A stretch of 64,000 bases of DNA from Oopsacas minuta (GCA_024704765.1 JAKMXF010000343.1:558001-622000); one strand, 5' to 3'; shown: positions 6,901 to 58,909, counted from the stretch's first letter. The notes: generated from the sequence alone by a model not told the origin. Made by a program: numbers and translations.

Positions 6901-9900
6901 AAGTGAGATCAGTACTGATACCAAATAGATCTACATAACTCCACATCACTTCTGGTGTGTTCATATTCTCTGTAACACAGTAGAGAGTAGTGTTTGATGT
7001 TAGAATTGTATTGTCTGATAATGGTGAGTATGATGATGCTATTACTTCTCCAAACACATTCACTAAAGGATAACATACCAAAGGATAAGTCCACCTGATA
7101 TGATACAACTTTGTTGTAAGCAGCAAGAAGATACAAATATATTTCATGTAATATTATTTCAGGGAAATACAATATATTCCTAATCCCAGTTAACAATCAA
7201 TTTTGTATGTAGTTCATGCTACTAGAGGTCACAAGTCCGAGCAGGAGCCACTCTTGTCAGGTTAAATCGGCCATCAAATTTGAAATAATTTAATCCATTC
7301 CTTTACGTGATAAATATCATGACTGATATTATTATACTGAATGATAGGATCAATACACATATTAATTTTAGAAATATACTAAACCTTGTTGGTTTATGCG
7401 TCATGTTGGGCTGGCTAGTGCCGATAAACTCCGCATGTATGTACTCTACTTACTATACACTGTCCAACAAAAATAAATATATAATATTGTATACAGGGCC
7501 GCTCCCAGGAATCTTTAGTGGGGTGTGAGCAAAGGAAGATTTGGGGCAAAGTCTCCAACAAATTTTTTGATAAATACTGTGAAAAAATTTTCAATACAAA
7601 TGTCGACTTAACCTGAAGATATTATCTATTGAGCTCAAAAGGACGGATTATTTGAAGTATACTTCGAAACGAATAGCGACTGGCTAAAGGGTCGTGACTG
7701 GGGATAATTCCTCCAGTATTAAATCACTAATTTCTCTTCTGAACAATTCAAATATACAAATATAAGCATTTACCTTTAATGCTACAGAAATAGCAACTCA
7801 GAGTATGTCCTATACATTGATGATCATTCCAGCGACTATTCGTTCTAAATTCTACACAGTTATATATCGATCCGGGATCATGGGGCTCATTAGTATCAAA
7901 ATTTCTATACGTACTATCACTGCCATCTACCCAAACAAATGTCCCTTCATTAGCTATATCATTGAGTCCTATCCAACAAGTACTAGTTCCTGTAAGTAGG
8001 CTTAACGACAGTGCATTCTCTTCAGATGATGATATTGTAGCTAGGTCGTAACCGCTCGAAAGACACTGTTGTCTAGAATCTACCCAGTTAATAGGAGAGC
8101 TTTGGAAATACCTGAAACATGTACCTTCATTTGATATTGCACCACATCCACTTGAAGGAACTACAATACAGAGGACATAAGATTGATACCATATCGATAT
8201 CGGTTAAAATTATCCGATACGATACATATCTGTACTATTTTTATGAAAATAGAAAACATATCGAAATATCTGATATATCTAAACTATCGGAAGTATCAGT
8301 AAATTGTCGAATATTGGAAAATATTGGAAATATCAGAAATATACTTTGGGAATTTTGTTCAGTAAGGACCATTTGAACACTATATCAATCTGTCTTGTTT
8401 AAGAAATATACCAATATGTTGTTGTAACGAAATTGAATACGTATTTTACACCATAATCCACATAGAAATTGAGGCAAACATATCTTGTAGCTGTTGCAGA
8501 GGTGAACCTCTTGCCACTGACAAAATTTGAAATATTTCATTTCGAATATTGAATAGGCTCCGTAGTCATTTGGTGCATATCATATATGGAAAGGGAGGTA
8601 TATCAATATTATTCAATGTCGATTGTTGTTTGTTTGTTTGTTTGTCGGTTGTCAAGGAAAGGATATAAGGCATGCAATTTTGAAATTGTCGCATAACTAT
8701 GTATTTTGGTATTGTAAACAACATCAATAGTATTAAATCTCAGTTGTTGTCTGTCCGTTGATATCGATATATATTGTTTTATGAATAGGATTGGTCTAAA
8801 CGGTTACCCAGGGGTAACTAAGTACACTGAATTCGAAATTCGCAATTTCAAGGTTCTAATATGAAAATGTATTGTTGAATATATAGGAAAAAATTAGCAA
8901 AATCTCAAAACGTAGATACTTGCTCTCATCGGCTATAATGGGGGTTGAAATCAAAATCTGATCGAGATAGCCGGATAGGGAGTACGAATATTGGATGTCC
9001 TCTGGTGTACGTATTAACGAAAGTCTATTGTAAAAAGGAATGGAATTTACCTGGATTTGGATTTAAGTCAAATATTACAGCTGTATAGGTCCCAACTACC
9101 CCTCCATCCTCAGTGACTTCACAGCTGTATGATCCAGGCTGAGTAGTGTACACTTGTATAGTACTAACTCCTGTAGTAGGATCAGTTGTAGAAGTGAGAT
9201 CAGTTCTGATACCAGATAGATCTACATAACTCCACATCACTTCTGGTGTGTTCATATTCTCTGTAACACAGTAGAGTGTAGTGTCTGATGTTAGAATTGA
9301 ATTGTCTGATAATGCAGAGTATGTTGAGCCAGTAACTTCTCCAAACACATTCACTAAAGGATAACATACCAAAGGGATAAGTCCACCTGATACGATACAA
9401 CTTTGTTGTATGCAACAAGAAATGTACATACATTTATGTAACAAAATTTCAGGAAAATACAATATTTTCCTAATTCCATGAAACAATGAATGTTGCATGC
9501 AATTCATGCTACTAGAGATCACAAGTCCGAGCCCGAGGCACTTTTGTCAGGATATACCGGCCATCAAATATGAAATAATGTAATTTATTCCTTTACTTAA
9601 TTCATTAGTATCAAGAACTATCTGATTAATAAATTTATTCATTTTAGAAATATACTAAACCTTATTGGTTTTATGCGTTATGTTGGGCTGGCTCGTGCCG
9701 ATAAACTCCCTCTGTTCATCCTCTACTTACAATACACGGTCCAACAAAATTAAATATATAATAATGTATGCAGGGCCGCTTCAAGAAATCTTTAGTGCGG
9801 TGTGCGAGCAAAGGAACATTTAGGGCAAAGTTTCCAACAAATTTTATGACAAATATTGTGGAATAATTTTCGAAATAAATATCGACTTAAACTGAAGATA

Positions 9901-11930
9901 TTATCTATGAACTCAAAAGGACGGATTATTTGAAGTATACTTCGAAACGAATAGCGACTGGCTAAAGGGTCGTGATTGGGGATAATTCCTCCAGTATTAA
10001 ATCACTAATTTCTGTGTTGAGAAATTCAAATATACAAATATAATCATTTACCTTTAATGCTACAGAAATAGCAAGCCAGAGTCTGTCCTATACATTGATG
10101 ATCATTCCAGCGACCACTCGATCTTGTGTGTACACAGCTTTCTGACGATCCACCATTGGGCTCATTAGTATCAAAATTTCTATACGTACTATCACTGCCA
10201 TCTACCCAAACAAATGTCCCCTCATTATCTATATCATTGAGTCCTATCCAACAATCAGTAGTTCCTGTAACTAGGCTTAACCACAGTGCATTCTCTTCAG
10301 ATGATGATATTGTAGCTAGGTCGTAACCGCTCGAAAGACACTGTTGTCTAGAATCTACCCAGTTAATAGGAGAGCTTTGGAAATACCTGAAACATGTACC
10401 TTCATTTGATATTCCACCACATCCACTTGAAGGAACTACAATACAGAGGATATAAGATTGATAACATATCGATATCGGTTAAAATTATCCGATACGATAC
10501 ATATCTGTACGATTTTTATGAAAATAGAAACACATCGAAATATCTGATATATCTAAACTATCGGAAGTATCAGTAAATTGTCGAATATTGGAAAATATTG
10601 GAATATCAGAAATATACTTTGGGAATTTCGTTCAGTAAGGACCATTTGAACACTATATCAATCTGTCTTGTTTAAGAAATATACCAATATGTTGTTGTAA
10701 CTAATTGAATACGTATTTTACACCATAATCCACATAGAAATTGAGGCAATCTTGTAGCCATTGCAGAGGTGAACCTCTTGCCACTGACAAAATTTGAAAT
10801 ATTTCATTTCGAATATTGAATAGGCTCCGTAGTCATTTGGTGCATATCATATATGGAAGGGAGATATATCAATATTATTCAATGTCGATTGTTGTTTGTT
10901 TGTTTGTTTGTCGGTTGTCAAGGAAAGGATATAAGGCATGCAATTTTGAAATTGTCGCATAACTATGTATTTTGGTATTGTAAACAACATCAATAGTATT
11001 AAATCTCAGTTGTTGTTTGTTTGTTTGTTTGTCCGTTGATATCTATTTATATTGTTTTATGAATAGGCTTGCTCTAAACGGTTACCCAGGGGGTAACTAA
11101 GTATACTGAATCCGGGATTCGCATTTTCAAGGTTCTCATATATGAAGTTATAGTTGTTTCTATGAATTTATAAAGGAAATACAAAGTTGAATCCTAAAAT
11201 ATAATTATAGACTTGCTCTTAACGGCTATAGGTGGCTATCAAAGGATGCTGAATTCTAATTTTGCATATTCAAGTTTATCTTAAATTCTTTGTGTTTTTA
11301 TGACTATAAAGTAAACAAATAGTTGAAATATTTATTTATTAATTCAATTTTGCATTTTATACTTTACTAAATTTGAGGCATAAAGTGCCAAGTCACTACC
11401 TGTTCGAAAGCCGCGGAGCGCGAGCAAGCTAAGCTGCTCGTAATTCAGGGCTGTATCAATTCATATTGAGTTGACATAATAAGCTAATTTTCTTGAATGA
11501 ATTGAATGAGTTGAAAGAGTTTACAACACTAATTAGGCCAGGAGGTATTAAAAGTAGGTACATTATCTGTTCTAAGAATTGGAAATCATCTAAGGAAATA
11601 ATGTACAATGTATACATTACTTCAGTCGTAACAGCAATGCATCAGTTATAAAGTTAGAAACTCAATATTTCGAATTTAACACTCGGTTATTAAATGAGTT
11701 GGTAAAATAAACACAGAATTTTGAATGAGATTAATGGGTTGGTGAAAGAAAAGTAAACGAGTTGGAAGACAAATATTGAGGTTTTTGCCAACTCAAAATG
11801 AGTTGATACAGCACTGCCGGGCTCGTATACATAATAATTATCAAATGAACACAATATACTTACCTTGTGAGTAGACTAGCGTGTGCAACTGAAGTGCCAA
11901 TATCGATAAAATGAAATATAGATGCTTCAT
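676..11930 (-). CDS. Receptor gene A (multi-exon): SP-(CTL-Ig)x>=7, 3' end beyond left edge
   Basis: 15 exons with GT-AG ends, all phase 1, no stops found; the intron at 1-675 is the reverse complement of the gene B intron preceding a CTL exon, so the gene continues off-window. Confidence 0.85.
1123..1503 (-). CDS. Gene A C-type lectin exon (QPN class)
   Basis: 381 nt; CWIGL, GQPN, WND, conserved Cys. Confidence 0.9.
1589..1891 (-). CDS. Gene A Ig-like exon
   Basis: 303 nt, AG/GT bounded. Confidence 0.85.
2142..2299. mobile_element. 158-bp MITE (second copy 53403..53560)
   Basis: 16-bp TIR cagggccgtagccact/agtggctacggccctg, internal caggtt repeats. Confidence 0.75.
2334..2756 (+). mobile_element. 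Non-autonomous Helitron-like dispersed repeat (copy at about 53595..54015)
   Basis: aaatctca...(ctgt/gttt)n-ccgttg 5' motif; 3' hairpin gagcc-aaa-ggctc followed by gt; boundaries approximate. Confidence 0.5.
3291..3671 (-). CDS. Gene A C-type lectin exon (QPN class)
   Basis: 381 nt; WIGL/QPN/WND. Confidence 0.9.
3757..4059 (-). CDS. Gene A Ig-like exon
   Basis: 303 nt, AG/GT bounded. Confidence 0.85.
4120..4512 (-). CDS. Gene A C-type lectin exon (EPN class)
   Basis: 393 nt; CWIGL, NEPN, WND. Confidence 0.9.
4758..5060 (-). CDS. Gene A Ig-like exon
   Basis: 303 nt. Confidence 0.85.
5121..5513 (-). CDS. Gene A C-type lectin exon (EPN class)
   Basis: 393 nt, copy of 4120..4512. Confidence 0.9.
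5759..6061 (-). CDS. Gene A Ig-like exon
   Basis: 303 nt. Confidence 0.85.
6122..6514 (-). CDS. Gene A C-type lectin exon (EPN class)
   Basis: 393 nt; one G>R change versus sister copies. Confidence 0.9.
6760..7062 (-). CDS. Gene A Ig-like exon
   Basis: 303 nt. Confidence 0.85.
7774..8160 (-). CDS. Gene A C-type lectin exon (EPH loop; not in ORF track)
   Basis: Hand-translated 387 nt open: VPSSGCGAISNEGTCFRYF...CWIGL...NEPHDPGSIYNCVEFRTNSRWNDHQC. Confidence 0.88.
9051..9353 (-). CDS. Gene A Ig-like exon
   Basis: 303 nt. Confidence 0.85.
10052..10435 (-). CDS. Gene A first C-type lectin exon (EPN loop; not in ORF track)
   Basis: Hand-translated 384 nt open: ...CWIGL...NEPNGGSSESCVHTRSSGRWNDHQC. 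Confidence 0.88.
11446..11816. mobile_element. MITE in intron 1 (copy 58428..58789; one-ended copy from 26020)
   Basis: TIR cagggctgtatcaattcat/atgagttgatacagcactg; no TSD found. Confidence 0.6.
11864..11930 (-). CDS. Gene A signal-peptide exon
   Basis: MKHLYFILSILALQLHTLVYSQ+G then gtaagt donor, phase 1. Confidence 0.85.
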
Positions 11931-11934
11931 ATTA

Positions 11935-12060
11935 TGCGGTTTGAATTGCATCACACACTAAACCATTACTTAAATAGCTGTCCTCCTCCTCCTCCTGAAT
12001 TTGTAATTGGATCCTCTCTTTGTAGAAATCTTTTGCCGTAGGTATTTTTGCTCAATCTCA
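11935..12060 (-). promoter_or_regulatory. Putative core promoter of gene A
   Basis: TATTTAAG about 40 nt upstream of ATG, (GGA)5, CCAAT; homologous to B and C promoters. Confidence 0.5.
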
Positions 12061-25749: not shown

Positions 25750-25900
25750 CACTTACGGCAAAAAGTACAACAGGTTGAGATTGAGCAAATACACTTACGG
25801 CAAAAGATTTCTAAAAGGAGTGGGTCCAATTACAAATTCAGGAGGAGGAGGACGACCACTATATAAGTAATAGTTTAGTGTGTGATGCAGTTCAAACTGA
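25750..25900 (+). promoter_or_regulatory. Putative core promoter of gene B
   Basis: TATATAAG 25860-67, CCAAT 25826-30, (GGA)4, duplicated acttacggcaaaa motif. Confidence 0.55.
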
Positions 25901-25905
25901 GTAAT

Positions 25906-25972
25906 ATGAAGCATCTATATTTCATTTTATCGATATTGGTGCTTCAGTTGCACACGCTAGTCTACTCACAAG
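25906..25972 (+). CDS. Gene B signal-peptide exon
   Basis: MKHLYFILSILVLQLHTLVYSQ+G, gtaagt donor. Confidence 0.85.
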
Positions 25973-28900
25973 GTAAGTATATTGTGTTCATTTGATAATT
26001 ATTATGTATACGAGTCAGGCAGTGCTGTATCAACTCCTTTTGAGTTGGCAAAACCTCAATATTTGTCTTCCAACTCGTTTACTTTTCTTTCACCAACCCA
26101 ATAATCTCATTCCAAATTATGAGTTTATTTTACCAACTCATTGTATAGCCAAGAGTTAATTTCGAAATATTGAGTTTCTAACTTTATAACTGATGCATTG
26201 CTGTTACGACTGAAGCAATGTATACATTGTTACATCATTTCCTTAGATGATTTCCAATTCTTAGGCCAGATAATATACCTACTTTTTATACCTTCTGGCT
26301 TAATTAGTGTTAACTCCGCGGCTTTCGAACATGTGGGGGACTTGGCACTTTGTACCTCAAATTTAGTAAAGTATAAAATTACAAAATTGAATTAATACAT
26401 AAATATTTCAATATTTGTTTACTTTATATTCATAAAAACACCAACTAAATTTGCATATGAGAATCCATATCTACATGATTATCATGTGATTAATCATATT
26501 TTCACAACTTCTGCGTATAATTCAAAATAATGTTAGAAATTTCGTTTTAACTGCTAGTCAGGGGTAATCGAGCATGTACTAATCTCTCATTCAGTGATTA
26601 ATCATATGATCATTCATCTTTTCACAGCTTTTTACACATACTTCAAATTGAGGCTAGAGAATTCTTTTCAAAAGGGAGACAGGGGGTAATTGCAAAATTA
26701 TTTAGAATTTTCTCCATTAGATTGGAGGATAAAATATGAAGTAGAGTAGGGGACTAATAATATGGAATATCCTGAAATATTTCTCAGATCCAAGAGCCAA
26801 AAATCATTCAGGACTGGTGCATTGCAGCATCTACAAGGGGGGTCAGGGAAGGCATACCCCCTGAAAAGAACAAATACACATAACCCTGGTCTGCACTACT
26901 AGTATGTCGGTTGGATCGTCGTTTAACAGTTGTTCTATGGTGTTTTGAAATTCTTACACTGCACTGGAAGGTTATAGTAGCTCACTGGCCCATTGACCCA
27001 TCGGGAAATCTCCCGTTCTCGCCGTAGGCCAGTCCAATCCTGGCTATGACAACAATGATGGTATTTTATCTGAGAAATATTTGCTCTCGCTTTGTAAAAT
27101 ATATGATTGTGCTAGTTTTCTAACAAGTAATACCATCGAGATTTGGAAATGGCTGAATAGCCATCTCCGGTAAACACGTAAAATACACACTCTATGGGTT
27201 GGAATATACGTGTGGGGTGGTAAAATCATAATATTTTCCCTATACTCAGATCCCTAAAGTAAGTAGTTATGCGACATCTCGGAAGTAATCTTTTTCGTTA
27301 ACATCAATTCATTCTTTGGCAATGAACTAACAGACAAACAACATTTGAGATGTATAAATATTGAATTCCCGCTGACGTGTGTTTTGTTCTCTGTACTCTA
27401 GTGCCTACTGACGGTTGTGATGCAATATCAAATGGAACGACATGTTTCAATTATTACACACATGGTGGCATTAATTGGATGGGATCTAGCCAACAGTGCC
27501 AAAATATCGGGTATGACCTAGCTACAGTATCATCTGCTGAAGAGAAGGCATTGATAGTAAGTATACGTACCAACCCAAGTAATAGTTGGATAGGGCTATA
27601 TAGCCCAAGCAGCGATAATACATTTGTTTGGATAGATGGTAGTGATAGTACGTATAGGGATTGGAATCCAGGAGAGCCCAGCGGTGGTACAGACTGCGTT
27701 GAAATGTATGGAACTGGTGATTATTTCTGGAATGATCTAGGTTGTAGTCAGAATTTGAACAGCTATATCTGTAGTAGTAATGGTAAGAATATACGATTAA
27801 TAACATTCAGTTAATTATTCAGTACCTAATTTAATGTGTTTGTTTGTTTCTATATATAATAGTACAAATTTGAACTGAGATATTCAGAACTAATCTAACC
27901 CTCAGTCGTATTACAGGTTAAGTACATTGTGTATATGGTTTGATGTATTCTTTTAGTGGACGTATTCGGAGAAGTAATAGCATCAATATACTCAGCATTA
28001 TCAGACAATACAATTCTAACGTCAAACACTACTCTCTACTGTGTTACAGAGAATATGAACACACCAGAAGTGATGTGGAGTTATGTAGATCCATCTGGTA
28101 TCAGAACTGATCTCAATTCTACAACTGATCCTACTACAGGTGTTAGTACTATACAAGTGTACACTACTCAGCCTGGATCATACAGCTGTGAAGTCACTGA
28201 GGATGGAGGGGTAGTTAGGACCTATACAGCTGTAATATTTGACTCAAATCCAAATCCAGGTAGATTCCATTCCTTTTACAATAGACTTTCGTTAATACGT
28301 ACACCAGAGGACCTCCAATACTCGTACTACCTATCCGGCTATCTTGATCAGATTTTGATTTCAACCCCCATTATAGCCGATGAGAGCAAGTATCTACGTT
28401 TTGAGATTTTGCTAATTTTTTCCAATATATTCAACAATACATTTTCATATTAGAACCTTGAAATTGCGAATTTCGAATTCAGTGTACTTAGTTACCCCCT
28501 GGGTAACCGTTTAGTGCAATCCTATTCATAAAAAAATATACATCGATATCAACGGACAGACAACAATTGAGATTTAATACTATTGATGTTGTTTATAATA
28601 CAAAAATACATAGTTATGCGACAATTTCAAAATTGCATGCCTTATATCCTTTCCTTGACACCCGACGAACAAACAAACAAACAACAATTGAGATTGAATA
28701 ATATTGATATATCTCCCATTCCATATATGATTTGCACCAAATGACTACGGAGCCTATTCAATATTCGAATTGAAATATTTCAAATTTTCTGACTGGCAAG
28801 AGGATCACCTCTGCAACGGCTACAAGATATGGTTGCCTCAATTTATATGTGGATTATGGTGTAAAATACGTATTCCATTTAGTTACAACAGCATATTGGT

Positions 28901-31900
28901 ATATTTCTTAAACAAGACAGATTGATATAGTCTTCAAATGGTCCTTACTGAACAAAATTACCAAAGTATATTTCTGATATTTCCAATATTCGACAATTTA
29001 CTGATATTTCCAATATTTTAGATATATCAGATATTTCGATATGTTTTCTATTTTCATAAAATCGTACAGATATGTATCGTATCGGATAATATTAACCGAT
29101 ATCGATATGTTATCATCTTATGTCCTCTGTATTGTAGTTCCTTCAAGTGGATGTGGTGCAATATCAAATGAAGGTACATGTTTCAGGTATTTCGAGAGCT
29201 CTCTTATTAACTGGGGAGATTCTAGACAACAGTGTCTTTCGAGCGGTTACAACCTAGCTACAATATCATCATCTGAAGAGAATACACTGTTGTTAAGCAT
29301 AGTTACAGGAAGTGGTAATTGTTGGATAGGACTCAATGATATGGCTAATGAAGGGACATTTGTTTGGGTAGATGGCAGTGATAGTACGTATAGAAATTTT
29401 GATAATGGTCAACCCGATCTTGGATCGTTAGAAAACTGTGTAGAATTTAGACCGAATGGTCGCTGGAATGATGCTCAATGTTTGTTACAGATATTTACTT
29501 GCTATTTCTGTAGCATTAAAGGTAAATGATTATATTTGTATATTTGAATTTTTCAGAAGAGAAATTAGTGATTGAATACTGGAGGAATTATCCCCAGTCA
29601 CGACTCTTTAGCCAGTCGCTATTCGTTTCGAAGTATACTTCAAATAATCCGTCCTTTTGAGCTCAATAGATAATATCTTCTGTTTAAGTCGACATTTATT
29701 TCGAAAATTATTCCACAATTATTTATCATAAAATTTGTTGGAAACTTTGCCCTAAATATTCCTTTGCTCGCACACCCCACTAAAGATTCCTTGAAGCGGC
29801 CCTGCATACATTATTATTTATTTAATTTTATTGGACCGTGTATTGTAAGTAGAGGATGAACAGGGGGAGTTTATTGGCATGGGCCAGCCCAACATAACGC
29901 ATGAAACCAACAAGGTTTAGTATATTTCTAAAATGAACAAATTTATTGATCAGATAGTTCTTGATACTAATATCAATGATGATATTAATTACATAAAGGA
30001 ATATATTCAATTATTTCAAATTTGATGGCAGGTATATCCTGACAAAAGTGCCTCGGGCTCGGACTTGTGACCTCTAGTAGCATGAATTACATGCAACATT
30101 CATTGTTGCATGGAATTAGGAATATATTGTATTTCCTGAAATACTGTTACATGAAATATATTTGCATTTTCTTGTTACATACAACAAAGTTGTATCATAT
30201 AAGGTGGACTTATCCCTTTGGTATGCTATCCTTTAGTGAATGTGTTTGGAGAAGTTACAGGTTCAACATACTCTGCATTATCAGACAACACAATTCTAAC
30301 AACAGACACTACACTCTACTGTATTACAGAGAATATGAACACACCAGAAGTGATGTGGAGTTATGTAGATCTATTTGGTATCAGAACTGATCTCACTTCT
30401 ACAACTGATCCTAATACAGGAGTTAGTACTATACAAGCATACATTACTCAGCCTGGATCATACAGCTGTGAAGTTACAGAGAGTGGAGGGATGAATAGGA
30501 CCTATACAGCTGTAATACCCGACACTGACCCAAATACAGGTAATTAGATTACTTATGTTACAGTACACCAGTAACATCGAGAGGGCTTATGGGGAGCCAA
30601 AATTCCCGGGGCGTGCTCACCAATTTCGACTCTCTCTTTACCGGATACAGACTAGTCAATAATTCTCAACATTTGTCAAAAGCGTTTCTATAATCAATAC
30701 AAACCTTCATACGTATATTCTATACTATTTTATGATATGCATGCCTGCTAAGAGCAAACCCATATGTGTCATATCCCTGTATGCAGTTCTCGTTTCTCCT
30801 TTGGATTGGCTAGAACCCTGTACACCCATAGGATCTTTTCTCGCTCCATGCGGTTGGGTTCAAGTGAATCAATATACGCGTGAATATATACATAAACTAA
30901 GTTGTGCCTCAGGCATTATATGTCATGCAGATCCTATGCATGCCATCTTTATTCCGTAAATAGTGAATATTATCATTTTACCGATATTTATTCAAATTTC
31001 GTTGACGCGCATCAAAATATAATTCTGAAGTGACAAAAGCTAAAAGTATACATAGACTGAACTGGAAATCCGTGTGTGCTTGAATAAGAACTTTTGATTT
31101 ACACAACAAAGTGTACATGCTTTGATAGTTTAGGTAATTAGGCTCACACAATTAGTAGGTTTGTCTCAACTAAAATCAATGTACAAATCTACTTAGTCCC
31201 TGCCCTGTACAGAACAACAAAAGTAGTAAAAATCCCCCGTACGTTTGGCAGATAAATAAGCCATACTTGCTATGTGCCAACTATCCCTATTGGCCCCATT
31301 GGATTTGAATTCAAAAGAGATTAATGTAGCGAGATGACAATGACTTCGAAAATTTTAGCGACACTTTTAACCTCTAGTTATGTCAATTCACGTGTGAACC
31401 TCATTATTGTTATAAATATGACGAGGCCTCATAAAACTTAACTTGTGGCCTTATGTGGCTCTCGGTAGCCATGTAATACACTATGTGATTTCCCATTATA
31501 CTTACCATTCACATGCTTTCTTTGTATTGTAGTGCCTACAAGTGGATGTGATGCTATTTCAAGTGATGGGACATGTATCAATTATTTCACAGGCTCACTC
31601 AACTGGGAAGATTCTAGACTACAATGTGTTTCAAGTGGTTACGACCTAGTTACAATATCATCAAGTGAACAGAATAACTTGTTGTTTAGCATAAATACTG
31701 GCTCAATAGAATGTTGGATAGGACTGAGGGAGACAGACATTAACGGGAGATTTACTTGGGCAGATGGTACTGTCAATAACTTCAGGAGATTTGATACTGG
31801 TCAGCCCAATGGTGGACCACCTGAACAATGTGTACATACTACGAATATCTTAGACACTTGGAATGATACACCATGTACAGACATACTGCCTTGCTACTTC

Positions 31901-34501
31901 TGTGGTACCAAATGTAAGTGTTTTTGTAATTTGAATAATTCTATAGTCAGAAATTTGGAATATGTAGCCTGAATTGTGAGACTTGTTTAAGAAATATTTG
32001 CCAATATTTGATGTACGTGAGACGTTTGCATTATATATATTGCTTGTTATCCTTTAGTGGACGTATTCGGAGAAGTAATAGCATCAACATACTCTGCATT
32101 ATCAGACAATACAATTCTAACAACAAACACTACTCTCTACTGTATTACAGAGAATATGAACACACCAGAAGTGATGTGGAGTTATGTAGATCTATCTGGT
32201 ATCAGTACTGATCTCACTTCTACAACTGATCCTAATACAGGAATTAGTACTATACCAGCATACACTACTCAACCTGTATACTACAGCTGTGAAGTTACAG
32301 AGAGTGGAGGGACGAGTAGAACTTATACAGTTGGGTTGTTCTCCCCAAATTTTTATACAGGTAGAATCCGACATACCATAGCAAAGTAGAATAATCTTGT
32401 ATGAATATGTATTTTGTATTTTTTCTCATAGAAGCTGTAGCGAATAGATATTATACTTACACGATTGGGATAGATAATGAAGATATCTATCTTTTCTATT
32501 CACCAGCTGATAACTCAGTACAACTTACTGATATTCACTGGATGATTCAAGGTCTACCAGGAATTTTGGCCAATCCACTTAACATTTACTCTCTGGCGTC
32601 TTATATCGGAGATATGAACGTTATCACCCTGAACTGTTATGATATCGAATCTGGAAATATTTTGGTCAGTGTTGCACTCTTCGTTCAAAGTTAGTTAGAT
32701 CATTAGCCTAATTCAGTGGAACCTCGTAAATACGAACACCAACGGACTGCCAAATTTTGTTCGCCTTTGTATTAGCCGGAGTAATACCAATTGAATATCC
32801 ATTGTAGGTACATAAATTTGTGTAATGTTTGTCCGTTTTATCAGAAAATTAGTATTAACCATGTTCGTATTAACGAGTTTGCACTGTATGTATATTAGAA
32901 TCATCAGTTGTATGATGTTATCTAGTTGTATATAATTATACTCATTAGATCAACCTCTAATTCAACTGGGCAACCAAATAATCACCTCATTTCCTCTTCT
33001 GCCTCCTGATGTTAACAGAGCAGATTTTACTATACTGTCTGAAGATGTAGTTCTGAGTACAAACCTGCAAGGGAGATGGCAGAGACCAAATAGTAATAAT
33101 GACACACTTAGCTATATCACTTTCGATATTTTCCAGCAATCTGACGAAGGACTGTACAGGTTCTATGTTACTAATTGGGAAGGAATAGAGACACTGGCTA
33201 TACAGATATACATTACAGCTGTTGGTAAGATATCTATAGGTTCTAGAATTTAATACAATGCATCATATCTAATCTACTGCGAGTCAAAACGTCTACAAAG
33301 GCCACGGATGGATTTCCTCGACAAAATAATTGGATAAAAGTAATTCCACCACTGCCAATAACACTTTAAACTACACATCACATCAACCCCCGAGCGGTCA
33401 GAATGTCCTAACAATATTGTTCTATTGCAAAAAGCAATCCGCTTTGATTAGTGAAATGCTTTTCTACACTACTATTAGTATAGGAATTAGGAGTACTGGT
33501 ATATTCTTTCGAAATTTGTACAAACAATGAAATAGCCGTCCATATAATAATGTATACGTAAACAGTAGATTTGGATATAATCAGGGCCTTCAGAAGCCCC
33601 ATGGGTAGTGAGACGGCTAATCGGCTATGCTGACTCATAGTAAATAGAACTAGAATTATTTCATGAAAAATGGGGCAGCCAAGGTTACCCAAGCCCTATT
33701 TTGAAGGCCTGGATACAATTAAGTATTTTGGGACATTTTAAAACATTTCTCAAGGGTTGTATTTTGGGAAATGTTCTATTTGGCCCTGTTCGTAACTTCT
33801 GATTAATCAGGGTTACTGTATTCTATTTAACAATTATTTACTTAATTTACTAAATATTTATTTATTTAGAATCTACACAAAGTATCATTAATTTAAGAAC
33901 AGACTCTTCTGGGGAAAGTTCAGTACTCGTATTTTGGGAGTTATCAGAATCTAATGCTAGTTATACTGATGTAATATTCTCAATATATTTGGGATTAGCA
34001 GATTACGAATTTCTCGTTGGTACAACACTATTTCACCATTACGAAATAACTAATCTACAAGGAAATGTAAATTACACAATTCGAGTAGAATTTCAGATTC
34101 CATTCTCAACAGAAAATGTTTCAGCAACTACTTATCACTTCCGCGAACCAATTGCAACTCCAACTAATAACATCACTCAATCTACAAAAAGCAATGTAAT
34201 AATTCCTACGACTAATCCAGTCATCTACGTCATAGTGGTGGGGGTAGTCATTATTATAATTCTACTGCTGCTGATTTTAGTGATTGCGGTAGTTGTTTGC
34301 TTTTTTATGAAGAGGAACTCTTTGAAAAAATCAGTGAAGTCTCAGACTAATCCTCAGCTTTTTGATCTTCCAGCACGCGGGAATGAAACTTATAACCAAG
34401 ATGTGAACGTAAATCTTGCATATTCGCCTGAGAAAAAAGTTGACCTTTCAATAGAAAAACCTCCTTTGGAAGTTTCTTCTCCTAACGACTACTCTACCTG
34501 A
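25906..34501 (+). CDS. Receptor gene B (10 exons): SP-(CTL-Ig)3-Ig-Ig-FN3-TM-tail, 1095 aa
   Basis: Exon lengths 67+381+303+384+303+381+303+258+276+632=3288 nt, in frame, GT-AG throughout. Confidence 0.88.
27402..27782 (+). CDS. Gene B C-type lectin exon (unique EPS class)
   Basis: WIGL, PGEPSGG, FWND. Confidence 0.9.
27957..28259 (+). CDS. Gene B Ig-like exon
   Basis: 303 nt. Confidence 0.85.
29138..29521 (+). CDS. Gene B C-type lectin exon (QPD loop)
   Basis: 384 nt; NGQPDLG, WND. Confidence 0.9.
30237..30539 (+). CDS. Gene B Ig-like exon
   Basis: 303 nt. Confidence 0.85.
30569..31473. mobile_element. About 905-bp TIR-bounded intronic insertion (partial mirror at 1..645)
   Basis: Ends cagtaacatcgagag/ctctcggtagccatg; flanks cagtacac/taatacac; empty site in the 80-nt gene C intron 54932..55011. 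Confidence 0.55.
31533..31913 (+). CDS. Gene B C-type lectin exon (QPN class)
   Basis: 381 nt. Confidence 0.9.
32058..32360 (+). CDS. Gene B Ig-like exon
   Basis: 303 nt, intact (PVYYSCEV). Confidence 0.85.
32432..32689 (+). CDS. Gene B divergent Ig-like exon
   Basis: 258 nt, phase 1-1; IHWMI...LNCYD beta-strand pattern. Confidence 0.65.
32949..33224 (+). CDS. Gene B Ig-like exon (not in ORF track)
   Basis: 276 nt open: GRWQRP...QSDEGLYRFYV (DxGxY motif, no canonical Cys). Confidence 0.75.
33870..34501 (+). CDS. Gene B FN3 + transmembrane + cytoplasmic tail exon
   Basis: VLVFWE...YEITNLQGNVNYTIRV (FN3 pattern), about 29-aa hydrophobic helix, KRNSLKK stop-transfer, TGA. Confidence 0.88.
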
Positions 34502-49882: not shown

Positions 49883-50514
49883 TCAGGTAGAGTAGTCGTT
49901 AGGAGAAGAAGCTTCCAAAGGAGGTTTTTCTATTGAAAGGTCAACTTTTTTCTCAGGCGAATATGCAAGATTTATGTTCACATCTTGGTTATAAGTTTCA
50001 TTCCCGCGTGCTGGAAGATCAAAAAGCTGAGGATTAGTCTGAGACTTCACTGATTTTTTCAAAGAGTTCCTCTTCATAAAAAAGCAAACAACTACTGCAA
50101 TCACTAAAATCAGCAGCAGTAGAATTATAATAATGACTACCCCCACCACTATGACGTAAAAGACTGGATTAGTCGTAGGAATTATTACATTGCTGTCTGT
50201 AGATTGAGTGATGTTATTAGTTGGAGTTGCGATTGGTTCGCGGAAGTGATAAGTAGTTGCTGAAACATTTTCTGTTGAGAATGGGATCTGAAATTCTACT
50301 CGAATTGTGTAATTTACATTTCCTTGTAGATTAGTTATTTCGTAATGGTGAAATAGTGTTGTACCAACGAGAAATTCATAATCTTCTAATCCCAAATATA
50401 TTGAGAATATTACATCAGTATAACTAGCATTAGATTCTGATAACTCCCAAAATACGAGTACTGAACTTTCCCCGGAAGATTCTGCTCTTAAATTAATGAT
50501 ACTTTGTGTAGATT
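49883..50514 (-). CDS. Gene C FN3+TM+tail exon
   Basis: 632 nt, homologous to 33870..34501. Confidence 0.85.
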
Positions 50515-53500
50515 CTAAATAAATAAATAATTGTAAAATAGAATACAGTAGACCCTCATTAATCAGAAGTTACGAACAGGGCCGAATAGAACATTTCCCA
50601 AAACACAACCTGTGGGAAATGTGTTAAAATGTCCCAAAATACTTAATTGTATACAGGTCTTCAAAATAGGGCTTGGGTAACCTTGGCTGCCCTATTTTTC
50701 ATGAAACAATTCTAGTTCGATTTACCATGAGTCAGCATAGCCGATAGCCGTCTCACTAGCCATGGGCTTCTGAAGGCCCTGATTATATCCAAATCTACTG
50801 AGTACGTGTACTCCTAATTCCTATACTAATAGTAATGTAGAAAAGTATTTCACTAATCAAAGCAGATTGCTTTTTGCACTAGAACAATATTGTTCGCACA
50901 TTCTGACCGCTCGGTGGTTGATGTGATGTGGAGTTTAGAGTGTTATTGGCAATGGTGGAATGACTTTTATCCAATTATTTTGTCGAGGAAATCCATCCGT
51001 GGCCTTTGTAGACGTTTTGACTCGCAGTAGATTAGATATGATGTATTGTATTAAATTCTAGAACCTATAGATATCTTACCAACAGCTGTAATGTATATCT
51101 GTATAGCCAGTGTCTCTATTCCTTCCCAATTAGTAACATAGAACCTGTACAGTCCTTCGTCAGATTGCTGGAAAATATCGAAAGTGATATAGCTCTGTGT
51201 GTCATTATCACTGTTTGGTCTCCGCCATCTCCCTACCAGGTTTGTACTCAGAACTACATCCTCAGACAGTATAGTAAAATCTGCTCTGTTGACATCAGGA
51301 GGCAGAAGAGGGAAAGCGGTGATTATTTGGTTGCCCAGTTGAATTAGAGGTTGACCTAATGAGCATAATTATACAATTAGACAATATCATACAACTGATG
51401 ATTCTAATATACATACAGTGCAAACTCGATAATACAAATATGGTGAATACGAGATTCGGCTAAGACAGACAAATTATTACACAAATTAATGTACCTACAA
51501 TGGATATTCAAATGGTATTACTCCGGCTAATACAAAGGCGAACAGGATTTGACAGTCCGTTGGTGTTCGTATTTACGAGGTTCCACTGAATTAGGCTAAT
51601 GATCTAACTAACTTTGAACGGAGAGTGCAACACTGACCAAAATATTTCCAGATTCGATATCATAACAGTTCAGGGTGATAACGTTCATATCTCCGATATA
51701 AGACGCCAGAGAGTAAATGTTAAGTGGATTGGCCAAAATTCCTGGTAGACCTTGAATCATCCAGTGAATATCAGTAAGTTGTACTGAGTTATCAGCTGGT
51801 GAATAGAAAAGATAGATATCTTCATTATCTATCCCAATCGTGTAATTGTAATAGCTATTCGCTACAGCTTCTATGAGAAAAATACAAAATCATATTCATA
51901 CAAGATTATTCTACTTTGCTATGGTATGTCGGAGTCTACCTGTATAAAAATTTGGGGAGAATAACCCAACTGTATAAGTTCTACTCGTCCCTCCACTCTC
52001 TGTAACTTCACAGCTGTATTATCCAGGTTGAGTAGTGTACACTTGTATAGTACTAATTCCTGTATTAGGATCAGTTGTAGAAGTGAGATCAGTTCTGATA
52101 CCAGATAGATCTACATAACTCCACATCACTTCTGGTGTGTTCATATTCTCTGTAATACAGTAGAGTGTAGTGTCTGTTGTTAGAATTGTGTTGTCTGATA
52201 ATGCAGAGTAAGTTGATGCTATTACTTCTCCGAATACGTCCACTAGAGGATAACAAGCAATATATATAATACAAACGTCTCACGTACATCAAATATTGGC
52301 AATTATTCCTTAAGCAAGTCTTACAATTTGGGCTACATATTCCAGAATTCTGACTATAGAATTATTCAAATTTCAATAACACTTACATTTGGTACCACAG
52401 AAGTAGCAAGGCAGTGTGTCTGTACATGGTGTATCATTCCAAGTGTCTAAGATATTCGTAGTATGTACACACTGTTCAGGAGGTCCACCATTGGGCTGAC
52501 CAGTATCAAATCTCCTGAAATTATTGACAGTACCATCTGCCCAAGTAAATCTCCCGTTAATGTCTGTCTCTCTCAGTCCTATCCAACATTCTATCGAGCT
52601 AGTATTTATGCTAAACAACAAGTTATTCTGTTCACTTGATGATATTGTAACTAGGTCGTAGCCACTTGAAACACATTGTAGTCTAGAATCTTCCCAGTCG
52701 AGTGAGCCTGTGAAATAATTGATACATGTCCCATCACTTGATATAGCATCACATCCACTTGTAGGCACTACAATACAAAGAAAGTATGTGAATGGTAAGT
52801 ATGAGTATAATGTAGTCCGCAAGGATTCAAAATTGCGAACAATGTACTTTACCTGTAGTTGGGTCAGTATCGGGTATTACAGCTGTATAGGTTCTATTCA
52901 TCCCTCCACTCTCTGTAACTTCACAGCTGTAGTATCCAGGCTGAGTAGTGTACACTGTTATAGTACTAACTCCTGTATTAGGATCAGTTGTAGAAGTGAG
53001 ATCAGTTCTGATACCAGATAGATCTACATAACTCCACATCACTTCTGGTGTGTTCATATTCTCTGTAATACAGTAGAGAGTAGTGTCTGTTGTTAGAATT
53101 GTATTGTCTGATAATGCAGAGTATGTTGATGCTATTACTTCTCCGAATACGTCCACTAAAGGATAACAAGCAATATATATAATATAAACGTCTCACGTAC
53201 ATCAAAATTGGCCAATATTCGTAAACAAGCATTACATTTCGGGCTACACATTCCAAATTTCTGACTATAGAATTATTTGAACAAGCAAGCTACGCCTACT
53301 TGCGTTACGCGGAAAGCGAAGTACGCTAGTAAGCGTGCCCACTGTATTCAGTATATTTGCATTTGAACATATGCATATCAACCATTTACATTTCTCAAAA
53401 TACAGGGCAGTAGCCACTAAAATAAAGCGGTCAGGTTAACTTGACAAACCTGACTGAGTGGTCAGGTTAATCCAACCAACCTGATTGATTGGTACCATAT

Positions 53501-56500
53501 TGTGGAAATTCAGTAACTAAAAGTGGTCAGGTTGAAACTTGACCAGTGGCTACGGCCCTGTAATAGCATTACATTGGCCACAAATTCATCAGATTATTAA
53601 ACCTCAGAGATTGTCTGTCTGTCTGTCCGTTGTCAAGAAAAGGATTTACGGTATGCAATTTTGAAATTATCGCATCACTATGTATGTATTCATCGTGTTT
53701 ATCAAGGAAGTAAATAGAATTCAATAAAACTAAATTAAATATATCGAACATGCTGAATCCGATTTTCACACTTGAGGATTAATCATATGTAAATATACTG
53801 TTGTTTTTATGAATATAAGTAAACAAATTTGAAAATTGAGGTAGAATCAGACTTTCAACGACTATACTGGGGTAATCGAGTGTGCTGAGTCAGATTATTG
53901 TAAACAACATTAATAGTACTTAATCTCAATTGTTATTTGTCTGTTTGTTTGTTCGTTGAATACCTCGAGGCGGAATGTGCCAAGTTCATCATGAAGCGAT
54001 GAGCCAAAGGCTCGTTAATCATGAATTCCACATAATATACTTAGGTACAGTTTATGGAAATGATCAATAAGTTATCTACATGACTTTCACCGCTTGTGTA
54101 TTTGAACTACTCAATATAAGCCGTAATATAATTTCTACGTACCGTAATTCAATTCACAAACCTAGATACAGGTTTAAGAAATTGGCATTTGAATAATTGA
54201 TACAATAGAGTCCTCAATGTAGTGGCTTACATAACATAGTTACAGGTTTAACAAATTTGAATTTGAAAAATGTTGCGCAATTGGAACCATTTGCATCCTA
54301 ATTGGACTGGGTTAGAGCCTATATCATATGATTACTACAATTGGTAAATTCTCGAATCTGAAAGGTCAATACATTTTGACACCTATCTCAGAGAGTTTTT
54401 GAGGTAGCACTTAGATCTTATAACTTGTTCCTAGATGTATTCCATTCCACACACGTGCCAAATTCGAAGTTTGTAGTCATTACCAGATCCTTAATCAATT
54501 CCGAACAAAATATAAAAAAACCATCCACAAATGAATATAAAAACACTTACATTTGGTACCACAGAAGTAGCAAGGCAGTATGTCTGTACATGGTGTATCA
54601 TTCCAAGTGTCTAGAATATTCGTAGTATGTACACACTGTTCAGGAGGTCCACCATTGGGCTGACCGGTATCAAATCTCCTGAAGTTATTGACAGTACCAT
54701 CTGCCCAAGTAAATCTCCCGTTAATGTCTGTCTCCCTCAGTCCTATCCAACATTCTATTGAGCTAGTATTTATGCTAAACAACAAGTTATTCTGTTTACT
54801 TGATGATATTGTAACTAGGTCGTAACCACTTGAAACACATTGTAGTCTAGAATCTTCCCAGTTGAGTGAGCCTGTGAAATAATTGATACATGTCCCATCA
54901 CTTGATATAGCATCACATCCACTTGTAGGCACTACAATACAAAGAAAGCATGTGAATGGGAAGCATAATGAGAAATCATAAAGTGTACTGTATCACCAGT
55001 AATCTAATTACCTGTATTTGGGTCAGTATCAGGTATTACAGCTGTATAGGTTCTATTCATCCCTCCACTCTCTGTAACTTCACAGCTGTATGATCCTGGC
55101 TGATTAGTGTAAACTTGTATAGTACTAACTCCTGTATTAGGATCAGTTGTAGAAGTGAGATCAGTACTGATACCAAATAGATTTACATAACTCCACATCA
55201 CTTCTGGTGTGTTCATATTCTCGGTAACACAGTAGAGAGTAGTGTTTGATGTTAGAATTGTATTGTCTGATAATGGTGAGTATGTTGATGCTATTACTTC
55301 TCCAAACACATTCACTACAGGATAACATATCAAAATGGTATATCAAACTGCATGTAAACTTATTAATTACTTACACTTAGTTCCACAGAAGTAGCAATAA
55401 TATGGATCATCACAGATGCCATCATTCCAACTTTCAGCGGCCAGATCCCATGTTTGTACACAGTTTGCAATTGTTCCGCCATTAGGTTCGTTAACATGAA
55501 ATTGTCTAAACGTGCTATTACTACCATCTACCCAAACAAATGTCCCTTCATTCTCTATATCATTGAGTCCTATCCAACACTGAAATGAAGGACCACTTAT
55601 AATACTATATAACAATGAATTCTCCTCAGACGATGACACTGAAGCTAAGTCGTAGCCTCTTGAAAGACACTGTAGTCTAGATTCTTCCCAGCTAATAATA
55701 CCAGAACTTGTCCAATATGTGAAACATGTCCCTTCAGTTGATATTGGATCACAGCCGGTTGTAGGCACTACAATACGTATTTATAATGAGAGGATCAATT
55801 TTATTGGTCATATCCTGTATACGTACATATATATGGTAAATCTCATAAAATACGAAGAAAGACAATGGCAATAACTAATACTGTCAACATGCCGCAACTC
55901 GAGTCCTCATAGAAATCAAAATATTATCGCGATAACGGATAAGGAGCACAAATATTGGAGGTTCCTGGTGTACGTATCAGCGAGAGTCTATTGGAAAATG
56001 TAATGTAATTTACCTGGATTTGGATTTGCGTCAAATATTACAGCTGTATAAGTTCTATTCATCCCTCCACTCTCTGTAACTTCACAGCTGTATGATCCTG
56101 GCTGATTAGTGTAAACTTGTATAGTACTAACTCCTGTATTAGGATCAGTTGTAGAAGTGAGATCAGTACTGATACCAAATAGATTTACATAACTCCACAT
56201 CACTTCTGGTGTGTTCATATTCTCGGTAACACAGTAGAGAGTAGTGTTTGATGTTAGAATTGTATTGTCTGATAATGGTGAGTATGTTGATGCTATTACT
56301 TCTCCAAACACATTCACTACAGAATAACATATCAAAGGATAAGTCCACCTGATATGATACAACTTTGTTGTAAGCAGCAAGAAGATACAAATATATTTCA
56401 TGTAATATTATTTCAGGAAAATACAATATATTCCTAATTCCAGTCAACAATGAATTTTGTATGTAATTCATGCTACTAGAGGTCACAAGTCCCAGCAGGA

Positions 56501-58903
56501 GACACTCTTGTCAGGTTAAATCGGCCATCAAATTTGAAATAATTTAATCCATTCCTTTACGTGATAAATATCATCACTGATATAGTGATATTATTATACT
56601 GAATGATGGGATCAATACATATATGAATTTTAGAAATATGCTAAACCTTGTTGGTTTATGCGTCATGTTGGGCTGGGTCGTGTCGATAAACTCCGCATGT
56701 ATGTACTCTACTACTATACACTGTCCAACAAAAATAAATATATAATATTGTATGTAGGGCCGCTCCCAGGACTCTTTAGTGGGGTGTGAGCAAAGGAAGA
56801 TTTGGGACAAAGTCTCCAACAAATTTTTGAAATACTGTGAAAAAATTTTCAATATAAATGTCGACTTAAACTGATGATGTCATCTATTGAGCTCAAAAGT
56901 ATGGATTATTTGAAGTATAATTCGAAACGAATAGCGACTGGCTAAAAGGTCGTGGCTAGGGATAATTCCTTCAGTATTAAATCACTAATTTCTTTTCTGA
57001 GAAATTCAAATATACAAATATGATCATTTACCTTTAATGCCACAGAAATAGCAAGTAGATATCTGTGTCATACATTGAGCATCATTCCATTGACCATTCG
57101 ACCATATAATTTCTATACAGTGTTCCGTCGATCCACCATTATTGGGCTCACCATTACCAAAATTTCTATACGTACTATCACTTCCATCTACCCAAACAAA
57201 TGTTCCTTCATTATCTATATCATTGAGTCCTATCCAACAATGAGTAGTTCCTGTATTTAGGCCTAACGCCAGTGTATTCTCTGCAGATGATGATATTGTA
57301 GCTAGGTCATAACCGATCGAAAGACACTGTTGTCTAGAATCTACCCAGGAAATTTGAGAGCCTCGGAAATACCTGAAACACGTACCTTCATTTGATATTG
57401 CATCACATCCACTTGAAGGAACTACAATATAGAGGACATAAGATTGATAACATATCGATATCGGCTAAAATTATCCGATGCGATACATATCTGTACGATT
57501 ATATGAAAATAGAAAACATATCGATATATCTGATATATCTAAAATATCGGAAGTATCAGTAAATTATCGAATATTTGTAAATATTGCAAATATCAGAAAT
57601 ATACTTTGGTAATTTCGTTCAGTAAGGATCATTTGAAGACTATATCAATCTGTCTTGTTTAAGAAATATACCAATATGTTGTTGTAACGAAATTGAATAC
57701 GTATTTTACACCATAATCCACATAGAAATTGAGGCAAACATATCTTGTAGCTGTTGCAGAGGTGAATCTCTTGCCAGTGAGAAAATTTGAAATATTTCAA
57801 TTCGAATATTGAATAGGCTCCGTAGTCATTTGGTGCATATCATATATGGAAAGGGAGGTATATCAATATTATTCAATCTCAATTGTTGTTTGTTTGTTTG
57901 TTTGTCGGTTGTCAAGGAAAGGATATAAGGTATGCCATTTTGAAATTGTCGCATAACTATGTATTTTGGTATTGTAAACAACATCAATAGTATTAAATCT
58001 CAATTGTTGTCTGTCCGTTGATATCGATATATATTGTTTTATGAATAGGATTGCTCTAAACGGTTACCCAGGGGGTAACTAAGTATACTGAATCCGTGAT
58101 TCGCATTTTCAAGGTTCTCATATATGAAGTTATAGTTGTTTCTATGAATTTATAAAGGAAATACAAAGTTGAATCTTAAAATATAATTATAGACTTGCTC
58201 TTAACGGCTATAGATGGGTATCAAAGGATGCTGGATTCTAATTTTGCATATTCAAGTTTATCTTAAATTCTTTGTGTTTTTATGACTATAAAGTAAACAA
58301 ATAGTTGAAATATTTATTTATTAATTCAATTTTGCATTTTATACTTTACTAAATTTGAGGCATAAAGTGCCAAGTCACTACCTGTTCGAAAGCCGCGGAG
58401 CGCGAGCAAGCTAAGCTGCTCGTAATTCAGGGCTGTATCAATTCATATTGAGTTGGCAAAATAAACGAATTTTCTTGAATGAATTGAAAGAGTTTACAAC
58501 ACTAATTAAGCCAGAAGGTATAAAAAGTAGGTACATTATATGTTCTAAGAATTGGAAATCATCTAAGGAAATGATGTAACAATGTAGACATTGCTTCAGT
58601 CGTAACAGCAATGCATCAGTTATAAAGTTAGAAACTCAATATTTCGAATTTAACTCTTGGTTATAAAATGAATTGGGAAAATAAACTCATAATTTGGAAT
58701 GAGATTATTGGGTTGGTGAAAGAAAAGTAAACGAGTTGAAAGACAAATATTGAGGTTTTGCCAACTCAAAATGAGTTGATACAGCACTGCCTGACTCGTA
58801 TACATAATAATTATCAAATGAACACAATATACTTACCTTGTGAGTAGACTAGCGTGTGCAACTGAAGCACCAATATCGATAAAATGAAATATAGATGCTT
58901 CAT
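49883..58903 (-). CDS. Receptor gene C (12 exons): SP-(CTL-Ig)4-Ig-Ig-FN3-TM, premature TAA in exon 9
   Basis: Exons sum to 3990 nt in frame; TAA at 52019-52021. Confidence 0.8.
51080..51355 (-). CDS. Gene C Ig-like exon (DEGLY)
   Basis: 276 nt open. Confidence 0.75.
51613..51870 (-). CDS. Gene C divergent Ig-like exon
   Basis: 258 nt open. Confidence 0.65.
51940..52242 (-). CDS. Gene C Ig-like exon with in-frame stop
   Basis: CAA CCT GGA TAA TAC AGC TGT; splice sites intact. Confidence 0.8.
52387..52767 (-). CDS. Gene C C-type lectin exon (QPN)
   Basis: 381 nt. Confidence 0.9.
52853..53155 (-). CDS. Gene C Ig-like exon
   Basis: 303 nt. Confidence 0.85.
54551..54931 (-). CDS. Gene C C-type lectin exon (QPN)
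   Basis: 381 nt. Confidence 0.9.
55012..55314 (-). CDS. Gene C Ig-like exon
   Basis: 303 nt. Confidence 0.85.
55375..55767 (-). CDS. Gene C C-type lectin exon (EPN)
   Basis: 393 nt; WDLAAESWND. Confidence 0.9.
56014..56316 (-). CDS. Gene C Ig-like exon
   Basis: 303 nt. Confidence 0.85.
57032..57421 (-). CDS. Gene C first C-type lectin exon (EPNN loop; not in ORF track)
   Basis: Hand-translated 390 nt open: ...CWIGL...GEPNNGGSTEHCIEIIWSNGQWNDAQC. Confidence 0.88.
58837..58903 (-). CDS. Gene C signal-peptide exon
   Basis: MKHLYFILSILVLQLHTLVYSQ+G, gtaagt. Confidence 0.85.
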
Positions 58904-58909
58904 ATTACC

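Follow-up and report, generated by a model that had tools for sequence, protein, structure and literature searches.

Can one face of a lectin domain diverge between gene copies whose surroundings stay almost alike, and is selection the reason? The question is raised by a 64,000-nucleotide (nt) stretch of the sponge Oopsacas minuta (GCA_024704765.1, JAKMXF010000343.1:558001-622000; hereafter the window, with positions counted from its first letter), in which a six-frame scan revealed 14 exons for C-type lectin domains (CTLDs). Four of them, here called A1, A2, B and C, form the subject of this analysis. An initial annotation had described them as near-identical exons with a hypervariable sugar-binding loop, and their coordinates, lengths (387/384/384/390 nt), frame-preserving indels and loop strings proved to be exactly as quoted there; that the exon at 29138 lies on the plus strand is a detail that it lacked. 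The best reading of the locus, with a probability of about 0.6, is in our view that the ligand face of the distal lectin domain is under diversifying selection, set against a background of gene conversion. The four exons are as follows.

7774..8160, minus strand: A1, CTLD exon, second lectin domain of gene A; 387 nt, phase 1-1; loop 7829-7897; motif EPH.
10052..10435, minus strand: A2, CTLD exon, first lectin domain of gene A; 384 nt; loop 10107-10172; canonical EPN, E and WND.
29138..29521, plus strand: B, CTLD exon, second lectin domain of gene B; 384 nt; loop 29401-29466; motif QPD.
57032..57421, minus strand: C, CTLD exon, first lectin domain of gene C; 390 nt; loop 57087-57158; motif EPN.

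These exons are bona fide CTLDs with the canonical fold. Each is bordered by an acceptor AG and a donor GT; its first two bases complete a codon and one extra base is left at its end (phase 1-1). They score 61-67 bits against Pfam Lectin_C (cut-off 22.6; the range for the seven CTLD exons scanned is 55-67 bits), and all 14 CTLD exons are consistent with the family PF00059. Eight cysteines and the CWIGL motif are invariant in the four, WND is retained and there are no stop codons. An AlphaFold2 model of A2 reached a predicted local distance difference test score (pLDDT) of 92.5, and in Foldseek it matched CD23 and the second carbohydrate-recognition domain (CRD2) of Endo180 with a TM score of 0.8 and a root-mean-square deviation of 1.4-1.7 Å. 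The five ligands of Ca2+ site 2 are complete in A2 and C (both EPN) and in B, where a coordinated EPN-to-QPD switch has taken place. In CTLDs this switch moves the preference from mannose-type to galactose-type sugars. All three indels between the exons are 3 nt long and in frame, whereas among 31 intron gaps just 4 have a length divisible by three.

Where in the protein do these domains sit? The window contains three paralogous genes for type I membrane receptors, two on the minus strand and one inverted. Their predicted layout begins with a signal peptide, after which CTLDs and immunoglobulin-like (Ig-like) domains alternate; more Ig-like domains then lead to an FN3-like stretch, and a transmembrane segment with a short tail closes the protein. 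Each domain occupies one exon of phase 1-1, so that further diversification by skipping or shuffling of cassettes might be possible. The domain order is A2-Ig-A1-Ig-(EPN-Ig)x3-QPN-Ig-QPN-Ig in gene A, which then continues past the window edge, S-Ig-B-Ig-QPN-Ig and onward in gene B, and C-Ig-EPN-Ig-QPN-Ig-QPN-Ig and onward in gene C. A1, A2, B and C therefore encode the first or second, membrane-distal lectin domain. Four sequencing runs of one sample contain the stretch, and one of these (X4) is RNA-like with exon-only coverage. Contigs of X4 link the end of the CTLD exon at 6122 to the start of the Ig-like exon at 6061 over a 60-nt GT..AG intron. In others, an Ig-like exon end (5759, which corresponds to 6760 within the 1001-bp repeat) is linked to the CTLD exon start at 6514. 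The predicted splice sites and the order CTLD-Ig-CTLD are therefore real for the EPN cassettes.

The divergence between the four copies is sharply confined. When the exons were aligned together with 900 nt on each side, mean pairwise identity in 30-nt windows was 90-98% in the larger part of both flanking intron and exon; it fell to 73-80% only in 120 nt, reaching from the loop to a few codons past WND, and returned to 95% by the exon end. In all six pairs the divergent block is bounded within the exon. The loop of 63-66 nt differs by 19-32% per pair, compared with 4.7-9.3% for introns and 3-11% for the exon framework (loop versus intron, six pairs: odds ratio 2.9-9.4, p 3e-3 to 1.5e-11). A sliding-window comparison of exon and intron had been suggested in the initial annotation, for which a loop no more divergent than the introns would have spoken against the idea of targeted change; the loop is the more divergent in every pair. 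Two smaller variable patches that it had placed after FRYF and before CWIGL are both present.

Most of the excess consists of replacements. In the loop, replacement (N) changes amount to about 32.5 over 51.7 sites and silent (S) changes to 4.5 over 14.3 sites, while introns show 0.133 changes per site; the loop N rate of 0.63 per site thus exceeds the intron rate with an odds ratio of 10.9 (p 2e-15). For the variable regions, defined as the three regions named in the initial annotation pooled with the segment after WND, we counted 70 N over 120.2 sites and 8 S over 35.8 sites (ratio 2.6, binomial p 0.003), with a synonymous rate not significantly above that of introns (p 0.14). The two front patches have 23.5 N versus 1.5 S (p 0.007), with zero synonymous changes before CWIGL, and the A1/A2 loop pair has a dN of 0.366 and a dS of 0.051 (omega ~7). 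The remaining core, at 0.044 N per site, lies below the intron rate (p 2e-4) and is under purifying selection.

A contrast is offered by other exons of the same genes. The CTLD exons of the QPN class share the duplication history of A1, A2, B and C, and because their loops are conserved (1 N and 5 S) and their overall omega is about 0.1, they serve as an internal control; the N:S contrast between the two classes has a p of 1.6e-6. In the Ig-like exons of these genes omega is 0.3-0.7.

Codon likelihood tests on the four sequences were run with our own GY94-type code. Comparison of models M1a and M2a over the whole exon gave a likelihood ratio test statistic (LRT) of 30-35 whichever of the three topologies was used; about 24% of codons fell at omega ~10 and 35-47% in a class of omega 0. 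With separate branch lengths the LRT was 9-12 for loop plus tail, 14.6-16.3 for the front part and 0 for the QPN class, and for the Ig-like exons of the same cassettes it was 0-4.8. In a parametric bootstrap under M1a the observed value was reached in 0 of 100 runs for loop plus tail and in 0 of 100 for the front; a null with mosaic topology reached it in 0 of 64, as did one with four-fold rate heterogeneity between blocks added (0 of 64). Sites with a posterior above 0.8, placed by secondary structure only, fall at the end of beta1, the end of alpha2, the alpha2-beta2 loop, the stretch from EPN to the loop cysteine, the beta3-beta4 hairpin and the segment after WND.

Exchange between copies has left its traces as well. 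Along the flanks, parsimony-informative sites group the four copies in three different ways from block to block, and the 1.2 kb around the exon have therefore been homogenised or exchanged. Inside the loop of about 70 nt the three possible groupings alternate over stretches of 10-20 nt, so that short-patch exchange among the copies appears to contribute there too.

Together these observations might be explained as follows. Unequal crossing-over and gene conversion would hold cassettes and introns at 90-97% likeness. In the distal domain (A1, A2, B and C) residues near the Ca2+/sugar site would gain replacements several-fold faster than the neutral background, namely those running from EPN/QPD to WND, in the hairpin that precedes WND, in the segment that follows it and in the two framework patches, while the fold-determining core would be kept conserved. 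Selection would in this way give each copy a separate ligand specificity (EPN, QPD and a non-canonical EPH/Tyr variant), and short-patch exchange between copies would add to the diversity of the loops. The anatomy and the pattern of divergence are solid, and the excess of replacements, the constraint on the core and the contrast with sister exons are direct observations. That selection is the cause, that glycan specificities differ, and that the receptors have a role in recognition, be it in immunity, towards symbionts or between self and non-self, is what these observations suggest to us.

Several points weigh against selection as the cause. The one-ratio omega is 1.44 for the whole exon (p 0.25) and 2.5 for the loop (p 0.13), neither significantly above 1, and by counts the loop alone likewise fails to exceed 1 significantly (p 0.16; four sequences with about 14 synonymous sites). 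The borders of the variable regions were drawn with knowledge of the varying residues, which favours N over S. When the null combined a mosaic of 4-10 codon blocks with 16-fold differences in rate, 23 of 100 runs reached the observed LRT, and the site-model test is therefore not proof. Synonymous change in loop plus tail runs at about 2.4 times the core rate, hinting that the stretch may be older rather than faster. In other species, too, these positions vary more than any others in the family, and they are therefore generally tolerant of change. Loss of function might play a part in two copies: A1 carries EPH and has Tyr for Glu two residues before the loop cysteine, and since two of five Ca2+ ligands are thereby changed its sugar site is probably altered or lost, while gene C has an in-frame stop in a downstream Ig-like exon. 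Finally, X4, the sole RNA-like run, contained zero contigs on A1 and almost none on A2. The codon-site dN/dS analysis proposed in the initial annotation thus has a divided outcome, positive in the site models and their controls but not significant in the single-ratio tests and lost under 16-fold heterogeneity. The same holds for its broader proposal of diversifying selection or patch conversion at the ligand site: the divergence of the loop over the introns, an omega of about 2-2.6 in the variable regions, the site models and the mosaic patches speak for it, but the loop-alone omega (p 0.13-0.16) and the 16-fold null do not.

The main competing explanation is a neutral escape from concerted evolution, in which unconstrained loops of the distal domain drift from an old duplication while conversion resets framework and introns; the divergence of the loops would itself block conversion tracts from crossing, and selection for diversity would be unnecessary. 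We regard this as rather unlikely. It would account for a loop omega not significantly above 1, for a synonymous rate in loop plus tail of about 0.31-0.35 per site versus 0.11 in the core, and for a tail with two deep lineages at omega 0.6-1, but it does not predict 70 replacements versus 8 silent changes in the variable regions or the near absence of silent change in the front patches. The block-wise switching of flank topologies indicates that conversion or crossover is indeed active, as neutral escape needs, but the divergent block ends within the exon in all six pairs, and the A1/A2 loops differ at a dN of 0.37 against a dS of 0.05. That conservation across the family is lowest at these positions agrees with relaxed constraint, whereas the sister QPN loops are fully constrained. 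Finally, the strongly rate-heterogeneous null matches the LRT in 23% of runs, but the mosaic and four-fold-heterogeneous nulls never attain it. The N:S ratios and the controls thus weaken neutral escape, with four sequences only to draw on.

Selection need not be involved either if the loops were mostly copied by short-tract conversion from distant family members elsewhere in the genome. Precedents for such imports are known from the MHC and from the conversion of chicken immunoglobulin pseudogenes. The alternation of groupings every 10-20 nt in the loop fits this idea, but imports from distant paralogues should carry many synonymous differences and few are present. A string of 14-15 nt around EPNGG is common to A2 and all QPN exons; it is the sole candidate donor sequence for the loops in the window and is more simply explained as the ancestral state. 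Conserved loop residues share codons in A1, A2 and B, and other classes use different codons. One Logan contig matches the A1/A2 framework and then continues with 249 unlike letters from the exact first loop base (7897, 10172), as an imported loop might; an EPN motif occurs in one frame of the first 30 of these letters, and the contig probably represents one more A-type copy in the same individual, or else a frameshifted copy. On balance we find import from distant paralogues improbable.

That the four exons are disused and degenerating is very unlikely, because the core is constrained (N 0.044 versus intron 0.133 per site, p 2e-4; 35-47% of codons at omega 0), exon indels are in frame in 3 of 3 cases versus 13% in introns, stops are absent, and splice sites, all eight cysteines, WIGL and WND are intact, with changes strongly clustered and not uniform, even though the whole-exon omega of about 1.3-1.4, the two Ca2+ ligands missing from A1, the stop downstream in gene C and the lack of RNA-like contigs on A1 and nearly so on A2 would fit decay.

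In its evolutionary pattern the locus resembles vertebrate natural killer and myeloid CTLD clusters and diversified lectins of invertebrates. Literature searches returned no account of such a receptor architecture, nor of diversified lectin loops in sponges. The initial annotation had likened the loops to the complementarity-determining regions (CDRs) of antibodies. The comparison is apt for germline diversity between paralogues but not for somatic variation, which was not seen. Among DNA-type contigs no variant letters were found inside the A1 and A2 loops. A word-based protein search with exon A1 returned only relatives at no more than 60% identity, each of them from an ENA assembly, and no further copies from the same species. 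Clusters of these relatives at 90% identity show scattered variation, though such clusters by construction exclude copies with very different loops.

Vertebrate clusters of natural killer and myeloid CTLD receptors (Ly49/KLR and the CD209/DC-SIGN family) evolve rapidly and encode type II proteins with a single C-terminal CTLD. They share with the present locus tandem paralogues, a ligand face varying on a kept fold, conversion with unequal crossing-over, and diversity in the germline. The receptors described here differ in being type I, with several CTLDs alternating with Ig-like domains of which only the distal CTLD varies, and no signalling motif was recognised in them. The mannose receptor family (MRC1, Endo180/MRC2, DEC-205, PLA2R, FcRY) provides the best sequence matches among solved structures, and CRD2 of Endo180 is among the best fold matches. 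Its members are likewise type I proteins with many CTLDs of which only some keep the sugar site. They carry an N-terminal ricin-type Cys-rich domain and an FNII domain, followed by 8-10 contiguous CTLDs. Here neither a ricin-type nor an FNII domain lies between signal peptide and first CTLD, Ig-like domains stand between the CTLDs, and each domain has its own exon in tandem cassettes. Lacking these two domains and having separated CTLDs, the receptors do not belong to the mannose receptor family.

The variable proteins of diversity-generating retroelements (Mtd, TvpA) also use the C-type lectin fold, and are altered by a reverse transcriptase and a template repeat through adenine-specific mutagenesis. 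Both make use of the fold as a scaffold on which the ligand site can vary massively, but here the variation lies between fixed germline copies and no such mutagenesis machinery accompanies it. A mechanism of this kind was considered for the present exons and dropped, as template repeat and reverse transcriptase are absent at the locus.

Among invertebrates, the FREPs and CREPs of Biomphalaria and the expanded CTLD repertoires of bivalves are diversified families with a proposed role in the specificity of innate recognition (PMC10875847, PMC10140915). The expansion and diversification are shared, and with FREPs and CREPs also the combination of immunoglobulin superfamily (IgSF) and lectin domains. 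FREPs and CREPs, however, are secreted proteins in which one or two IgSF domains precede a single C-terminal lectin domain, while the present proteins are membrane receptors with alternating arrays and with germline paralogue diversity concentrated in one domain. Glass sponges have so far yielded a single described lectin, that of Aphrocallistes vastus (AvL), a 34-kDa galactose-binding protein with one CRD (PMC4557014, citing Gundacker et al. 2001). AvL is likewise a Ca2+-dependent hexactinellid C-type lectin, with a proposed role in cell recognition and aggregation; it is set apart by its description as a single-CRD protein, and the cited review describes no multi-domain Ig/CTLD receptor.

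Why would the locus matter? If the loops were selected apart, it would offer a compact and testable case of a lectin receptor family that generates recognition diversity, in which gene conversion would hold the scaffold uniform and selection would alter nothing but the ligand face of its outermost domain. Little is known in sponges of the molecules by which non-self is recognised, and here the locus would suggest receptors able to tell apart the glycans of microbes, food, symbionts or conspecifics. The four domains are in any case natural variants (EPN, QPD, EPH/Tyr) on one scaffold for work on structure and specificity. In its boldest and decidedly tentative form, the proposal is that an early-branching animal might possess a germline repertoire of cassette-built receptors, in which selection diversifies the CDR-like loops of the outermost lectin and conversion homogenises the rest, as a lectin-based system for non-self, symbiont or allorecognition.

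The other CTLD exons of the three genes are given below.

4120-4512, 5121-5513 and 6122-6514, minus strand: three EPN-class CTLD exons of gene A, in a 1001-bp tandem repeat.
55375..55767, minus strand: EPN-class CTLD exon of gene C.
1123-1503 and 3291-3671, minus strand: QPN-class CTLD exons of gene A, with an Ig-like exon (1589-1891) between them.
31533-31913 (plus strand), 52387-52767 and 54551-54931 (both minus strand): other QPN-class CTLD exons.
27402..27782, plus strand: S, CTLD exon, first lectin domain of gene B; EPS motif, two of eight cysteines missing.

In the EPN class, the initial annotation had stated that the exons at 4120 and 55375 differ mainly beside WND. This is borne out: four of their six residue differences, all non-synonymous, lie in the 6 codons before WND, where there are no silent changes (window-corrected p ~0.007). 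The region 3745-7082 comprises three tandem 1001-bp units of an EPN-class CTLD and an Ig-like exon that are 97-98% identical, and the cassette array therefore appears to be still expanding by unequal crossing-over. In the QPN-class exons (1123, 3291, 31533, 52387, 54551) the loop codons have 5 synonymous changes over 15 sites, about 2.4 times the rate in the rest of the exon, while the loop protein is conserved; this may be due to chance, or to a locally higher mutation rate or age. Exon S lacks the cysteine before WIGL and the first cysteine of the CYFC motif, both of which are kept in every other exon, and their joint loss suggests that the two form a disulfide.

The Ig-like exons are located as follows.

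6760..7062, minus strand: 303-nt Ig-like exon of phase 1-1; the window contains 16 such exons.
4758-5060 and 5759-6061, minus strand: Ig-like exons between EPN-class CTLDs.
676, 1589, 3757, 4758, 5759, 9051, 27957, 30237, 32058, 51940, 52853, 55012, 56014 and 60328: starts of the Ig-like exons other than that at 6760.

With 20 bits against Pfam Ig_3, the Ig-like exon remains below the cut-off of 30. Its AlphaFold2 model is all-beta (pLDDT 87), and the top Foldseek matches are all immunoglobulin V/I-type domains, though weak (E ~1e-3, TM ~0.5); C28, W40 and the Y-x-C77 motif are invariant. The Ig-like exons at 51940-52242 (minus strand) and 60328-60630 (plus strand) share an in-frame stop, with TAC changed to TAA (QPG*YSC). 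Either gene C and a partial copy D are pseudogenes, or the stop-bearing phase 1-1 exon is skipped.

The ends of the genes were predicted at the following positions.

11864..11951, minus strand: predicted signal-peptide exon of gene A; ATG at 11951 or 11930; phase-1 donor AAG/GTAAGT.
25885..25972, plus strand: predicted signal-peptide exon of gene B.
58837..58924, minus strand: predicted signal-peptide exon of gene C.
32432..34501, plus strand: predicted 3' exons of gene B, from splice-site prediction only.
~32432-32689 and ~32949-33224, plus strand: two further beta-rich exons of gene B.
~33870-34501, plus strand: last exon of gene B, with FN3-like stretch, transmembrane segment and a tail of ~65 residues with three Tyr.
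49886..50569, minus strand: last exon of gene C (FN3-like, transmembrane segment, tail), homologous to the last exon of gene B.

The predicted signal-peptide exon and its phase-1 donor are conserved across genes A, B and C; a CTLD exon follows it directly, and from there the two kinds of exon, CTLD and Ig-like, take turns. Open reading frames (ORFs) for CTLDs and Ig-like domains also alternate on a contig of a relative with 50-60% protein identity. On that contig (385-1519 and 19242-20438) the lectin/Ig cassettes have a reverse-transcriptase ORF and two ORFs for TRAF-type zinc fingers as neighbours.

Direct and inverted segmental duplications are abundant across the locus. An inverted repeat of at least 3.8 kb (48569-52347 versus 64000-60223, 99.6% identical) spans the 3' half of gene C and extends to the edge of the window. 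Its origin is either a fold-back in the assembly or a duplication that took place very recently. A second inverted duplication, 14332-24701 versus 46018-37686, is 90-95% identical and carries an intronless ORF of 536 amino acids with a match to Pfam Aa_trans (16151-17758, plus strand; 42581-44188, minus strand) as well as remnants of a mariner-type transposase (14278-14616, 45734-46219).

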